Of a DNA stretch of 64,000 nt, positions 11,630 to 21,659 are shown piece after piece. How positions within the stretch are numbered: the stretch's first letter is position 1; every line of letters begins with the position of its first letter. The DNA is from Bugula neritina (Eukaryota > Animalia > Bryozoa). The notes under the pieces were generated by a model. It was not told where the DNA came from. It saw nothing but the letters and a program-made list of their open reading frames with translations, and made no database searches. The stretch lies in assembly GCA_964035545.1 (NCBI GenBank), contig OZ037765.1:21513504-21577503 (forward strand), read 5' to 3'. Both the position numbers and the translations under genes were made by a program.

Positions 11630-14250
11630 TAAAAATCACTAGATACATCAATGGTCCTGGTGAATCCATTATATTAACTATTCTAATTTCTCCTCGAGTA
11701 AGCTTTGATCTTGTCACATATTACAGACCACGTAGTGAATCCCATCTTATGATACTTTCTAAAATTCTTAATGATAACAACTCCAAATGCCCTTTGGTGC
11801 TTGTAGGTGATTTTAACCTGGCAGACATTGATTGAACTGATGGTCAGGGTAGAGTTAGTAAATCTTCCAGAAAACCATATTTTTACAGGGAAGCTTCAGA
11901 TCTTTTTAAATGTTCCAACTTAGTACAACTTGTGCAAGGTCCCACCCATAAGAAAGGCAATACTCTGGACCTGTTCCTTGTTGAATCTGTTCTTTTTTAT
12001 TCTTTGGATATCGAGTGCAAGGTCTTACCAGGAATCTCAGACCATGACATGATCTTAGCAGAGATTCACACACTGCACCCAAATACTAAAAATATCCAAA
12101 ATATCCCTGACAATGGCAAAGTAAAGTACAGTTTTAAAAAAGCAAATTTTGAGGAAATTAACCGTCTTTTTTCTGATCTCTTCCTACAGCTTACTGACAA
12201 GGATTGTCCTGTTAGAATTAAATGGTAACGTTTTAGAGACATGACTCTGCACTCATTAGAAAATTTTGTACTCTCTCTGCTCTCACGACCCAAAGGCAGG
12301 CCTTGGATGACACGAGAATTGCTGCGCTCCATCAGGAGAAGGGATCGTGCCTACCAGGCCTTTAGGCAGTACCCTACTAAAAGAAACTTATTATATTTAG
12401 AACGCCTTAAAAAGGCAGTCAAAGCAGAAGTTGATACAACAAAAAGAAATTTCATAGAGTGCCATATCACAAATGAATTACAAAATGGTAACACCCAACC
12501 TCTTTACAACTTTATTAGCAAATCCCGAGGACAGTCAAACCATCTTGGCTGCTTGGAAAATATCTTGCCAAAAAGAATTCCTGACTCATTAGCAGATTTT
12601 TTCTCCTCCGTGTTTAACAACAACACTCACCCCATACCAGACTTTGCATTACAAGTACCACCATTACGGGTCATGCCCATGTTAAACATAACAATAGAAG
12701 GGCTGACCAATCTTATCAAGAAACTAGACATCTGAAAGGCCAGTGGACCAGATGAAATATCTTCGTACTGTATCAAAGAATTTAGTAAAAATGTACCAAA
12801 ATTTCTTTCATGTCTCACTTTAGTTATGCAGGCCAGTTTAGATCACAATAGTGTACCACGAGACTGGAAAACAGCCAATGTAATCCCCATATTTAGAAGT
12901 GGAAGACGAGATCTGCCAAAAAATTATAGACCTATTAGCCTCACATCAATAACATCAAAGTTGATTGAACATATTATTGCTAGTTTTATGTGGCAACACA
13001 TAGGTAACTACAACCTTGTCAATAATAACCAACACGGCTTTCGAAAAAAGCTCAGTACCACCACACAATTGCTTGATGTTGTCCACCATACGGCTAAAGC
13101 ACTAGCCGAGCACAAAGCATACCATCTTATATCTTTTGATTTTGCAAAGGCCTTTGACAAGGTCCCACACAAACTTCTAATTTACACAAGATTAAAGCCT
13201 ATAAGTTTGATGTGAATGTAGTGAAATGGATTGAACAGTGGCTATCAAATAGAACATCTATGGTTCTGGTTAACGGTAAGAAGTCCCACCAATTTGCCGT
13301 TACATCAGGTGTGCCTCAGGGCTCAGTTTTAGCGCCTCTTCTTTTTTTGTTATTTATAAATGACATGCCACTCTGTGTAAATGATTCATATTGTCGACTA
13401 TATGCTGATGATATTTTGTTAGGTATGGACATAACAGAATGTGGACCATCCAAACTCCAAGAAAGTGTAACAGCGTTGTATGACTGGTCTATTAAATGGG
13501 GCATGAGTTTTAACCCAAACAAATGTATGCATATGGCCATAAGAAAAAATCTTCCCAGTTTTAGGCTTTTTATGAATGGTGTCGCCATACTCCAAACCTG
13601 CGGTTTAAAATACTTGAGTGTATACATTCAAAGTGACTTCAAATGGCATAAACATGCAATGAACACTGTTAAAAAGGGAAACAAATTGTTAGCAATGATA
13701 GGAAGATGCCTGTTTAGCGCTAATACCAAGACAAAAATGATAGCCTTTAATACGGTTATCCGACCAGTTCTTGAGTATGCTAGTCAGGTATGGTCACCCT
13801 ACATTAAAACATTAATAGACAAGGTGGAAACAGTTCAGAGACGGGCTGTTAAGTGGGCGTACAGACTCGGTCCTGTAGAGAGTTTTTCAGAGTGCATGAT
13901 AAAAAACAATATAGAACAACTTAAAGAAAGAAGACAACACCTATATTTGAACTTTCTAAAAAGAATTGAGTTTGGTTTATATGAAGTACAGCTTATTGAT
14001 TATATTTCTTTTAATACTTCATATTTAACACGTCGAGGAACACTCAACCCACATTTTGGTCTAGACCAATTTAAGTTTTCTTTTTACAACAGAATAAAAC
14101 CCATACTTGAAGGGCAAGATCCCGATTCACTAATGTAGCCAAAAAATTTTCTCTCCCTGTACCATTAAATCGGTCATGCCTGTTTGCTGATTTTAGTATG
14201 AAACCTATATGCATATCCACTTAATGCCCTAGGGCGTATTGGATTAATCT
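11630..14250 (+). mobile_element. 5'-truncated CR1/L2-group LINE (APE endonuclease + reverse transcriptase), inactivated
   Basis: APE motifs VGDFN, PTH..GNTLDL, SDH; RT motifs YRPISLTS, NQHGFR, DFAKAFDKV, SGVPQGSVLAP, YADD, RPVLEYASQVWSP. Collinear ORFs are broken by stops at 11833, 12226 and 12733 and a frameshift near 13185; the 3' end has a GCCCTAGGGC palindrome (14226-14235) followed by a CA/TA tail. Confidence 0.93.
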
Positions 14251-16908: not shown

Positions 16909-17644
16909 TATTATTAACTAGTGATGCTAGCTAAGGGCATTAAAGTCATTTTATTTTTGGTTCAACCTTCTTATTCAAGTATACAATATCAATGTGTAAG
17001 TAGGTTGGTCAATTATTTGCCACCCAATTTAATTATAACTTACATGTAACTAAGTTGCATCAACTACAACATCATATTAAATAGTTTCGAACATTGTTAT
17101 TTATTGTATAGCTCTAATATGTCTGTAAACCAGCTAGTTTTTATTTATTGTTTTTGGTGAAATCATATATATATATTTATGTTAAGTTTATATTATAATG
17201 TTTAGTATTAAAATGATATCTGTGTAATTACTAAAAGTTGATCATTGAATTTCTATTATATATTGTGGACCACTCTAGTAAGCAGAATAGGATTTAAACT
17301 GTAAAGATGTCTCAACAATTTATCTCAGTTTTGAATCAAAGTGTTATAGAAGTTTATATATGGTGTGCATAGCTGTTATTTAATAAACAGTGCAACTTTA
17401 TTTCCATTACGACTTACGAGTATTATAGCGGACACATATTAGTAATATTACACATTATTATTAATATTACAGTAATATAGCTGACACATACAGGGCAGAT
17501 TAGTATCTGCTGATGCAATAATCTGCACACCCGGCAAGATTAATCTGGAGCATTAGTCGATTCAATATAAACATCAGCATAAAGATAAATATCAGCAGTG
17601 GTTAAGCTTGTTTTATTGAAATCTTTGTAAGAAATGGTATGACT

Positions 17645-18539
17645 TTAGTTTAAGTTAACATTATACACTGAGTTAGACATATAAAACTGCATATCCATTG
17701 CTGTTACAGTCAGTGGAATCTGCCCATTAATAGATGTCAGACAAAACCCTGTAAAATATATTGAAAGGTGAGCAATGAAAATTCTACACAATGCTGCAGA
17801 CATGTTATAGAAAGATAAATAATATATAAGTTATAGTCAGTGCAAAAATTTATCTGCCATTTGCCTTTGCCACTGGTTTCCATTGCTTCGCATAATTCTA
17901 TTGGATTTTTCATTCAATGTTTGGAAAAAGTTTCATTGAATAGAATCAATTAAGTTCATGCAAACAGCAACCACAAATCCATCCTTACAGCAATGGCTAA
18001 TTTTGTCTGTAATAAATATTATAAAACACATGAGCAACACTCTAAGTGCTTATGAGCTACTATACCGTATAGAAATGACATGCAATGATTACCTTCATCT
18101 CCATATTTTAGAGGGTCAAAACTTTCTCCAGTATCAGTCCTTGTATACAATTTAAACTGGCCCAGAGCTGGTTTTATGCAAACTTGAAACTTTTTGTCGC
18201 TGTTCTCAGAAGTAAACAAAACATTTGCCTCTCCTTTGGGATAATTCCAATAAATTTGTCCTGCTGCACAACTTTTTATAGAAATCTTTGCAGTTGAGGC
18301 GACTCTGAAAATGAACAATGTATGACACATAATAATAATATTATGTATACTCAAGTCATACAGGATAAATGTGTAGACCGCAGCACAGTAAAGAATGCAT
18401 AGGCTGCATATAGAAACTTTTAATAGTATGAGACAAGTTTAAATATTGTTTTATGATTATAAATGATGTTGTAAATAAGTAGGTTGCTAGCAGCAAATAA
18501 TATTTATAGCCTAAACTCACAGCCACAACCACCCACACG

Positions 18540-18574
<35 letters not shown>

Positions 18575-18709
18575 CAAATTAGTTGACTTTCGCCAGGTTA
18601 CTTACTCTTGCTGGTTGACATATGCTGTACATTCATCATTGAAGAATAATCCTTCATTGTATCTTAGAAGCATTACAAAAAGACATCCTAATAAGAAAAT
18701 TCTTTCCAT
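17645..18709 (-). CDS. Small secreted meteorin-N-domain-like protein, copy A (139 aa, 3 exons)
   Basis: Exons 18709-18606, 18304-18093, 17748-17645 splice in frame: MERIFLLGCLFVMLLRYNEG-LFFNDECTAYVNQQEVASTAKISIKSCAAGQIYWNYPKGEANVLFTSENSDKKFQVCIKPALGQFKLYTRTDTGESFDPLKYGDEGFCLTSINGQIPLTVTAMDMQFYMSNSVYNVNLN*. Hydrophobic leader, 4 mature Cys, and C-x2-G-x3-W-x-YP-x-G and C-I-K-P motifs as in METRN/METRNL; supported by the adjacent paralog. Confidence 0.8.
18537..18573. repeat. (CA)n microsatellite
   Basis: Directly visible. Confidence 0.95.
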
Positions 18710-19494
18710 ACTTACGCTGCTCAAAAAGTTATGTATTAAGTTGAAAAATGTTGCTGTATAAAATATACCTGGCTACTTTACTAACTTCAGTTATAGGGAC
18801 ATTATATTATATTATATGAACTATTCTATGTTTAGTGTGGTTATCAGTGTGAGAGAAACCATCAGCTACATGGTACTTTTTGAGCTGACCGTGGCACCAG
18901 TTAAGTACAGTTATAATCATTACGTATAACTGTTTTAGTGGTGTTGAGGAATAACTTCCACATGTACTATAATCTAACAATGTTAGTGTAGGTATAATGG
19001 CATTCCAATCAAAGGCAGGATCAGGCTGCTAAATCCCTCTTTCTAAGACTTCACACCAGAAAGCCTATTAAAATTTGTTATGAGCACTTTTACTAATAAA
19101 AATAGCTTATTTCTCTATTTTATTTTATAGAGCCAAGTTATTATTCAAACTGGTAAATTACAGCAGCTAGCAGCTCCAACTGTAAGATCTACTATGCAAG
19201 TTTATGTAAAACAGAAAGTAGCAGTTAGATTACAACATTACATATTAATTGCTGATTTTTCAGTGCATGTGGATTGTAGCAGACAATAAACATAAGGTAA
19301 ATATAGTTATGTAGGAGTTTAAAAAGCAACACATGTTACAGTTTTTTTATGATGCAGGAATTAATTTTTATTTTTTAATATAAATGCTATGCTGCATTTT
19401 TAGCAGTAAAATACAATTGTTGAGCAGCATTAAAAGTTCAAAAAGTTAATAATACCAATCAATCAGAGCAGAGCTCAGTATTTTTATTATAAGG

Positions 19495-20364
19495 CTAGAG
19501 AATAAAAATGGTGTATCCAGTGTTAGCCACACTCAGTTGTGTATCTACAGGAGTTATCTCTAGAGGTATTTGTCCTGTCACAGACTCCAAACAGAAATCT
19601 GTAAAATTAACATCGAGGACTGTTGCATATAACTTATTATCACAGTTAGAACTGCTAACATACTGTAGTTTTTCAGTCTCTTTTGTGTAATAAACAGACT
19701 TTGTAAAACTGTAACTGCATTTAAGATATGCAGAACTCAATCCGGTACCAAATTTCTATACAATGTACCAACTCCTGTCTGCATGGCAAAAATATCATGT
19801 CCATTCGAAAAGTAAGAAAAGAAAACTATGTATAATATGAATTATAATCACTCAGCTAAATTATATTGGCAAAGTTGGTAGCAAACAAACTTGGACCCTC
19901 ACATACTTTTTATAATTCTACTCTGCTTATATTCACTATTGTTTGCTATAAAACAAACAACTCAGGAATAATATTTTGACAAGAAGGATACTAATTTTAA
20001 GTAATTCCTGGCCCATCTAAAAAGTGGTTGCAGCCATACAATATTTGTGTGCATCCAGGCATGTTCAGAAGTCTTACAAATTGCTTATTCAATATAGCAT
20101 GGGAAAGTTGCTTTAATTTCAAGTTTTGAAAGTCTGAAGGTGTGAGCTTATTATTACAGACGTTACAACCTTGTATTTTTCTGATTCAGTTTAATTTGAA
20201 CGTCTTAAAAAAGCAAAAAATGTACAATAATAGCCAAACCTTACTGCATTTGGTATTTTATAAAAAGCTCAAAGTTTTTCATGACTTAGAAGTGATATCA
20301 CTTTAGATAATTGTAGGTCACAGCAATTTACAAATCATGCAGCACATATCATAGCTATAAAAAT

Positions 20365-20437
<73 letters not shown>

Positions 20438-21137
20438 GTGTGTGTTTACAAGCTAGGGTTTGTGTCTCTATAAAAACATGCAGCTTCTTACAGGCACATT
20501 TTCACTGAATAAATGCATCCATATATTTAAAATTTGCATATTGTTTATTCTATATACAAAATTCCACCACAACTGTCAAAAATCTGAAGAATTTTAGTAT
20601 TTTAGAGGCTTGAGAAGCCCTGTTCTAGTTCCCTGCTGCTCAAACTCAATTATGTTACATTGTTAATAATCACCTTCATTGTCGTACTCTGCAGGGTTGA
20701 AGCTTTCTCCTGTATCTGATCTCCTGTACAACTTGAACTGATCCGATGCAGGTGCTATGCAAACTCTAAACTTATTCGTAGGGTCATCAGAGGTGAAAAA
20801 TATTTTTCCAACTCCAGCTGGATTGTTCCAGTAAATCCTCCCTGTGATGCATTTGTTAACATCTATTTCTGCTGAAGTTTTTCCTTTAATCTGAAAGTAG
20901 CTGCAAGCAAAATAACCTCATCATCTAGCATAGATTATTTTGATTTTTCATAAAATTATTTATATTGTAGAACAGTCCAAGAAGTGACAACTAGTGTATT
21001 ACATATTTAAACATTGTTTTCAACAATATCTCAAATACTTACTATTCATCAATAAAAGCAGTGCATTCATTCAAGAATAATCCATTACAAGTTTGTAGTA
21101 AAATTAGTACAACTGAAAATAAGAGACTGAAAAGCAT
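19495..21137 (-). pseudogene. Meteorin-N-domain-like protein, copy B (tandem paralog; exon1/exon2 junction out of frame by 1 nt)
   Basis: Exons 21137-21043 (MLFSLLFSVVLILLQTCNGLFLNECTAFIDE), 20890-20674 (IKGKTSAEIDVNKCITGRIYWNNPAGVGKIFFTSDDPTNKFRVCIAPASDQFKLYRRSDTGESFNPAEYDNE) and 19598-19495 (DFCLESVTGQIPLEITPVDTQLSVANTGYTIFIL*). Same exon layout as copy A, but the total is 416 nt and the junction creates TAA. May be a true pseudogene or a 1-base assembly error. Confidence 0.7.
20365..20445. repeat. (TA)n(TG)n compound microsatellite
   Basis: Directly visible. Confidence 0.95.
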
Positions 21138-21659
21138 TTTCACTTAATTGCTATTTGGAATGAACATTTAAAGCGAAACTAATACGATAGAAAGCATGTG
21201 ATGGTCTTTGATGAGTTTCTTATCAAAGTTATATCAACATGAGAAAGAACAACTGGTTTATAATTTTAATAGAAGGTTTTTATTCTACCAACAAGAGGAC
21301 ATCATTTTTCAATGAAATATAAAAATAAAAGCTTGAAATTGAGTTTATAAATAGACATTATATAGCATGATAATAACTGTTACATGCATATTATTATACA
21401 ACAAGACATTATGAACAGTACTGCAACAAGAGATTTTTATCATATAATATTTACATTATTATGTTACTACGTGTAACATTAGAAGAGATGACAAATTAAC
21501 AACAATTATCATATTATATGTAAACTAAAAAAATAGTTCAACACAAATAAATTAAACAATTTACAAGACATTCAATATTTTAAAATTTCAATCTTGAACC
21601 AGCGGAACGCTCAGTAATCTGGGAGACATGAAGGCAGCTGCTGCTGGAAACTGATTTCT

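Follow-up and report, generated by a model that had tools for sequence, protein, structure and literature searches.

A tandem pair of bryozoan genes predicted to encode single-domain secreted proteins with a meteorin-like signature

The window analysed here, a stretch of 64,000 nucleotides from the bryozoan Bugula neritina (assembly GCA_964035545.1, contig OZ037765.1, positions 21,513,504 to 21,577,503 of the forward strand), carries on its minus strand two adjacent three-exon genes, A and B, which are real-looking, conserved and unannotated. Both proteins are predicted to be secreted, with a leader that would be cleaved off and a single compact domain of ~120 residues. The explanation we put forward, with somewhat less than even confidence, is that A and B are functional, anciently duplicated genes encoding stand-alone relatives of the N-terminal CUB-like domain of meteorin. 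The domain would probably be all-β and held by four invariant cysteines, probably forming two disulfides, and the small secreted proteins would act extracellularly as soluble ligands or binding modules devoid of the NTR half of meteorin, a role that we infer from the architecture only.

Gene models, leaders and termini

The earlier note on this DNA had described two adjacent three-exon genes sharing a set of signature patterns, and both are present as described, with open frames, GT..AG ends at all four introns of the pair and a last exon of 104 nucleotides (nt) in each gene. The coding sequence comprises 426 nt in B and 420 nt in A, encoding 141 and 139 amino acids (aa), respectively. The features, in window coordinates, are the following:

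21167..21172, minus strand: TATA-like TTTAAA of gene B, 35 nt before the ATG (consensus match only)
21043..21137, minus strand: gene B exon 1, 95 nt, with the ATG, the hydrophobic leader, the mature start LFLNEC and the first cysteine; ends in phase 2
20674..20900, minus strand: gene B exon 2, 227 nt, with the domain core, Cys2, the G-x-IYWN-x-P-x-G signature and Cys3; ends in phase 1
19495..19598, minus strand: gene B exon 3, 104 nt, with FCLES containing Cys4; stop TAG at 19497-19495
19483..19488, minus strand: AATAAA polyadenylation-type signal of gene B, 7 nt past the stop
18762..18767, minus strand: TATA-like TATATT of gene A, 58 nt before the ATG (consensus match only)
18606..18709, minus strand: gene A exon 1, 104 nt, with the ATG, the leader and LFFNDEC; ends in phase 2
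18093..18304, minus strand: gene A exon 2, 212 nt, with the domain core, Cys2, the signature CAAGQIYWNYPKG and Cys3; ends in phase 1
17645..17748, minus strand: gene A exon 3, 104 nt, with FCLTS containing Cys4; stop TAA at 17647-17645
17612..17617, minus strand: AATAAA of gene A, 28 nt past the stop

The two genes display the same organization, with intron 1 in phase 2 and intron 2 in phase 1 in both, and their products are 47% identical overall in a global alignment and 50% identical across exon 2. The sequence patterns common to A and B comprise (i) ECTA, (ii) C-x2-G-x-IYWN-x-P-x-G, (iii) F-x-VCI-x-PA, (iv) QFKLY-x-R-x-DTGESF, and (v) FCL-x-S-x2-GQIPL. The predicted mature proteins are 119 residues long in A, with cysteines at positions 7, 27, 57 and 88, and 122 residues long in B, with cysteines at positions 6, 30, 60 and 91.

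The assignment as secreted proteins of ~120 mature residues with a single domain, made in the same note, is supported. By inspection, the leaders of A, B and three related loci from other contigs (L004, L005 and L007) are hydrophobic and 18-22 residues long; position -1 is G or S, and the conserved LFLNEC mature start follows in all five loci. At position -3, four of the five have a small residue (A, C or V), copy A having N. At the other end of the protein, the stop falls 33-38 residues past the FC motif that contains Cys4 in A, B, L004, L007 and L009, with an AATAAA located 7-77 nt after the stop in each of these five loci. The stop of B lies 785 bp from the ATG of A, and the gap between A and the end of the next gene is some 600-700 bp. 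Because of the conserved stop, the polyadenylation signals and the nearness of the next genes, little room is left for further exons. In addition, the NTR profile PF01759, which may not recognize the NTR domain of meteorin, matched only two places in the genome (C1 at 14.20 Mb and C5 at 1.74 Mb), neither near the window. The view that the genes end with no NTR exons thus stands, and a single-domain, NTR-less architecture of the predicted A and B proteins is supported.

The region is AT-rich (32% G+C), and microsatellites lie within the introns of both genes. Long (GT)n/(CA)n tracts occur in intron 1 of A (18517-18581) and in intron 2 of B (20354-20453), where contigs built from reads break. 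Across 17802-18069, in intron 2 of A, word depth in run X1 rises to 615-673, about sixfold the value of ~100 around it, which suggests a repeated element inside this intron; contigs are broken at 17951/17984, within the same intron.

Relatives in unannotated contigs

A and B are the only copies in the 216-Mb B. neritina assembly, and at least ten other loci were found in unannotated metagenome or Logan contigs, with 30-57% identity in the exon-2 core. The relatives were recovered by (i) a phmmer search with B exon 2 against 1.84 billion cluster representatives, yielding six true relatives of 38-44% identity; (ii) a protein search with profile A1, built from the exon-2 family, yielding the same exon fragments plus P0009 only, whereby a seventh relative was added; and (iii) a scan of JGI metagenome contigs, yielding three further loci. 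The seven exon-2 homologues match the family profile at E values of 1e-22 to 1e-29. Two other sequences from the search of representatives, P0006 and P0008, were rejected as false matches with repeat-inflated scores, and a protein homologue search with the open frame of A exon 2 gave no candidate. Each relative is an unnamed fragment the size of an exon, with no Pfam domain, on a short metagenome or Logan contig, and the contigs that carry the relatives have no neighbour gene in common. A scan against Pfam gave no match at E <= 10 for any exon of A, of B, of the third gene G3 described below, or of four homologues. Annotated homologues were not encountered: none is named among the 1.84 billion representatives or among the matches of the profile search.

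Where the contigs are long enough, the exon-2 match is preceded by exon 1, encoding the leader and LFLNECTA (both seen in L004, L005 and L007), and followed by exon 3, encoding FC-x2-S-x2-G-[QK]-[IV]-P-L, with GT-AG introns in the same phases. The stop is kept at the position it has in A and B in three other loci, L004, L007 and L009. Across eleven sequences, exon 2 displays nine invariant positions (C, G, Y, W, P, C, F, R and D). The pattern seen in A and B goes beyond chance: contigs obtained independently, from different samples, show the exons, the leader, the phases and the invariant residues again. Between members, non-synonymous divergence ranges from 0.37 to 0.9 and synonymous sites are saturated.

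A second haplotype is represented in the one public DNA run that contains the stretch, with the frames of A and B intact, as well as the acceptor of B exon 3. The mature parts of the two proteins differ between haplotypes by four synonymous changes versus one non-synonymous change. Just upstream of the B exon 3 acceptor, at 19601-19608, the second haplotype differs by one substitution and the loss of 2+2 bases; the AG of this acceptor is preserved, as is a pyrimidine-rich tract. Judged from these sequence comparisons, the family predicted from A and B is real and undescribed, so far known only from unannotated contigs of invertebrate type.

The meteorin signature and competing readings

Metrnl comprises an N-terminal CUB domain and a C-terminal NTR domain, as described from prediction in a 2026 review (PMC13359822). 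The domain of A and B had been likened in the earlier note to the meteorin-type CUB-like domain, and part of this comparison stands: the motif is truly present in the Meteorin chain 7TL6 (134 aa) at matching positions. In profile searches of the Protein Data Bank (PDB; 177,635 sequences), A1 aligns to residues 27-63 of this chain with E = 1.1, and the larger profile A4 matches it with E = 1.6. The A1 alignment places two cysteines, G, W, YP, G and C-[LI]-[RK]-P all in register, with Cys28 and Cys59 of the 7TL6 chain opposite Cys27 and Cys57 of the predicted mature protein A and Cys30 and Cys60 of B. The signature C-x2-G-x3-W-x-YP-x-G ... C-[LI]-[RK]-P is found near residues 28-62 of the secreted protein, copy B having N in place of the Y before P. 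A language-model search (Atlas) with A exon 2 gave clusters of CUB fragments as the nearest named ones (score 0.90, 26/30 matches).

The other part, homology itself, is not established, and a series of results weighs against it. At E 1.1-1.6, the match of A1 and A4 to 7TL6 does not exceed what chance would give, and the motif is matched better (E = 0.04-0.1) by 7KOE_D, a ferredoxin-like chain that is unrelated. The phmmer search over the 1.84 billion representatives returned no meteorin at E <= 0.001, single-sequence searches of the PDB with A exon 2 and P0004 returned none, and the exon-3 family profile had no match in the PDB. With respect to the CUB fold, (i) the Atlas recognition value for A exon 2 is low (1726); (ii) B exon 2 falls near other β-sandwich families in the language-model search; (iii) PF00431 (CUB) is not matched by any exon of A or B in Pfam; and (iv) hhalign, run with the family sequences joined across exons and X at each split codon, gives a probability below 1% for the family against the CUB exons of this genome. 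The AlphaFold2 models of exon 2 alone are unusable, with predicted local distance difference test (pLDDT) values of 58 (8 aligned sequences) and 50 (11 aligned sequences). A Foldseek search with the better of these models gave meaningless results. Meteorins are reported to be vertebrate proteins, Metrnl having orthologues also in amphioxus and tunicates but in no further invertebrate group (PMC12316458). None of the RNA runs among the public sequencing runs contains the 4-kb stretch of A and B. As a separate observation, the stretch C-P-F-G-N-I-E-W-N-Y-P-R-G of 7KOE_D reproduces the signature almost perfectly, which is a warning on motif-level matches in general.

Several of these results would also fit real genes of an unrelated, lineage-restricted orphan family, encoding a small secreted protein with two disulfides (an immune, adhesive or larval-settlement factor, for example) and resembling meteorin through a short motif acquired by chance or convergence. 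We consider this a serious possibility, if one falling somewhat short of an even chance. It draws on the E value of ~1 for 7TL6 and the better motif match of the unrelated 7KOE_D, on the lack of any meteorin in the phmmer search of the 1.84 billion representatives, on the confinement of the likeness to a stretch of ~37 residues, the exon-3 profile having no match in the PDB, and on the absence of known meteorins outside chordates (PMC12316458). Against a fortuitous motif, however, its offset from the mature N-terminus, the Cys-Cys spacing (30 versus 31) and the size of the domain all agree with secreted meteorin, the matching positions are the invariant ones of the family, and the language-model search leads toward CUB. 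That the domain is a β-trefoil of the FGF, IL-1 or lectin-like kind, not a CUB-like sandwich, is improbable in our judgement, even with Symfoils (symmetric designs derived from FGF-1, including 3O4A, 3O4B, 3P6J and others) as the top PDB matches for A exon 2, P0004 and profile A4, at E values down to 0.0013, and with a mature size of ~120 aa that fits this fold. The Symfoil score is a sum of three identical weak repeat matches of 5-8 bits each, no single stretch of which passes, and the same summing artefact gave the spurious repeat proteins P0006 and P0008. Moreover, no natural FGF, IL-1 or ricin-type protein was matched in the PDB searches, no exon has a Pfam FGF or IL-1 match, and hhalign between thirds of the family alignment gives a probability below 1%, with no internal three-fold likeness.

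Wrong gene models, with the exons belonging to a larger transcript that may run on into NTR exons, or dead and unexpressed relics, would also account for the lack of an RNA-seq run containing the 4-kb stretch, the models having been drawn from sequence alone. This seems very improbable: each gene starts with an ATG and a leader and has an uninterrupted frame, and the splice phases are conserved; the stop occupies the same position in A, B and three other loci, with an AATAAA after it; only 785 bp lie from B to A and ~600-700 bp from A to the end of the next gene; the NTR profile has no match inside the window; and the second haplotype retains the frames and the B exon 3 acceptor. As for the relationship to meteorin, true homology of the domain is suggested and is given a confidence moderately below even, a rating that follows from the mixed sequence evidence and from the literature that places meteorins in vertebrates, amphioxus and tunicates.

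A third gene, surroundings and known systems

A search of the whole genome with the back-translated pattern C-x2-G-x3-W-x-YP gave nine places versus one for a reversed control, one of the nine being copy A. Another candidate gene carrying the pattern, G3, encodes 160 aa in three exons:

G000:C3 25113735-25114808, minus strand: gene G3, with exons at 8808-8605, 8281-8155 and 7886-7735 of L027

The predicted G3 protein begins with a leader and has four cysteines, and CKKGTIEWHYP is located ~30 residues from its mature start; intron 2 of G3 is in phase 1 after ...NE, as in A and B, and the stop is followed ~70 nt later by AATAAA, with no NTR exons. The frame and stop are kept in a sibling (L061, from JGI metagenome 3300002729) of 90-92% DNA identity. 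The motif of G3 (G-x-IEW-x-YP) is nearer to that of meteorin than are those of A and B. A search of the PDB with G3 exons 1 and 3 gave no match to meteorin or 7TL6, and hmmsearch of the joined G3 with profile A1 gave a match limited to the motif by which G3 was found. Compared to A and B, G3 is otherwise unalignable, with its first intron located elsewhere, a longer C3-C4 spacing and a length of 160 aa. G3 suggests that the signature marks a broader, rapidly diverging set of secreted proteins in this genome that lack NTR. A putative NTR-like exon of G3, at L027 3252-3407 on the minus strand, 4.3 kb downstream, was rejected, having an unfit splice phase and no Pfam match; its open frame, with C-x2-P-C ... 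D-Y-I-K-H-G, is loosely similar to the start of the meteorin NTR domain.

Elsewhere in the window, consecutive open frames at 11932-14138 on the plus strand are those of a reverse transcriptase element of the long interspersed nuclear element (LINE) type, apparently frame-shifted into pieces. The right half, at ~36800-58000 on the minus strand, contains many exons that by eye are like a dynein heavy chain, with P-loop and AAA-module peptides.

A possibility about which we are rather more doubtful than confident is that a protostome (lophotrochozoan) possesses, in A, B and perhaps G3, homologues of the meteorin N-terminal domain that stand alone. If true, the ligand domain of meteorin would be older than chordates, having been a secreted module in its own right either before it was fused to NTR or independently of this fusion. 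Meteorins act as ligands of a cytokine- or neurotrophin-like kind, and their origin is now placed in chordates (PMC12316458). A free-standing version of the N-terminal domain in a bryozoan would push this origin back and would also serve as a minimal model of the meteorin ligand domain. If the likeness is one of motif only, A and B would represent one more lineage-restricted secreted family, ordinary, yet useful for the annotation of bryozoan genomes, in which these genes are now uncalled.

Compared to the N-terminal domain of meteorin, A and B are alike in that (i) they are predicted to be secreted; (ii) the domain begins at the mature N-terminus; and (iii) the signature lies at the same chain positions. 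The sizes are 134 aa for the 7TL6 chain and 119-122 aa for A and B, the Cys-Cys spacing in the motif is 31 and 30, respectively, and meteorin presumably has, like A and B, four cysteines in the same order. On the other hand, A and B have no NTR domain, their similarity to meteorin is confined to ~37 residues at E ~1, and they come from a bryozoan, whereas meteorins have been reported only from chordates (PMC12316458). The canonical CUB domain (PF00431) resembles A and B in its length of ~110-120 aa and its four cysteines; its hallmarks C-G-G, C-x-W-x-I and Y-D are, however, absent from A and B. The trefoil unit of the Symfoil and FGF-1 type displays a weak, repeated likeness to the stretch of exon 2 from YP-x-G to DYG.

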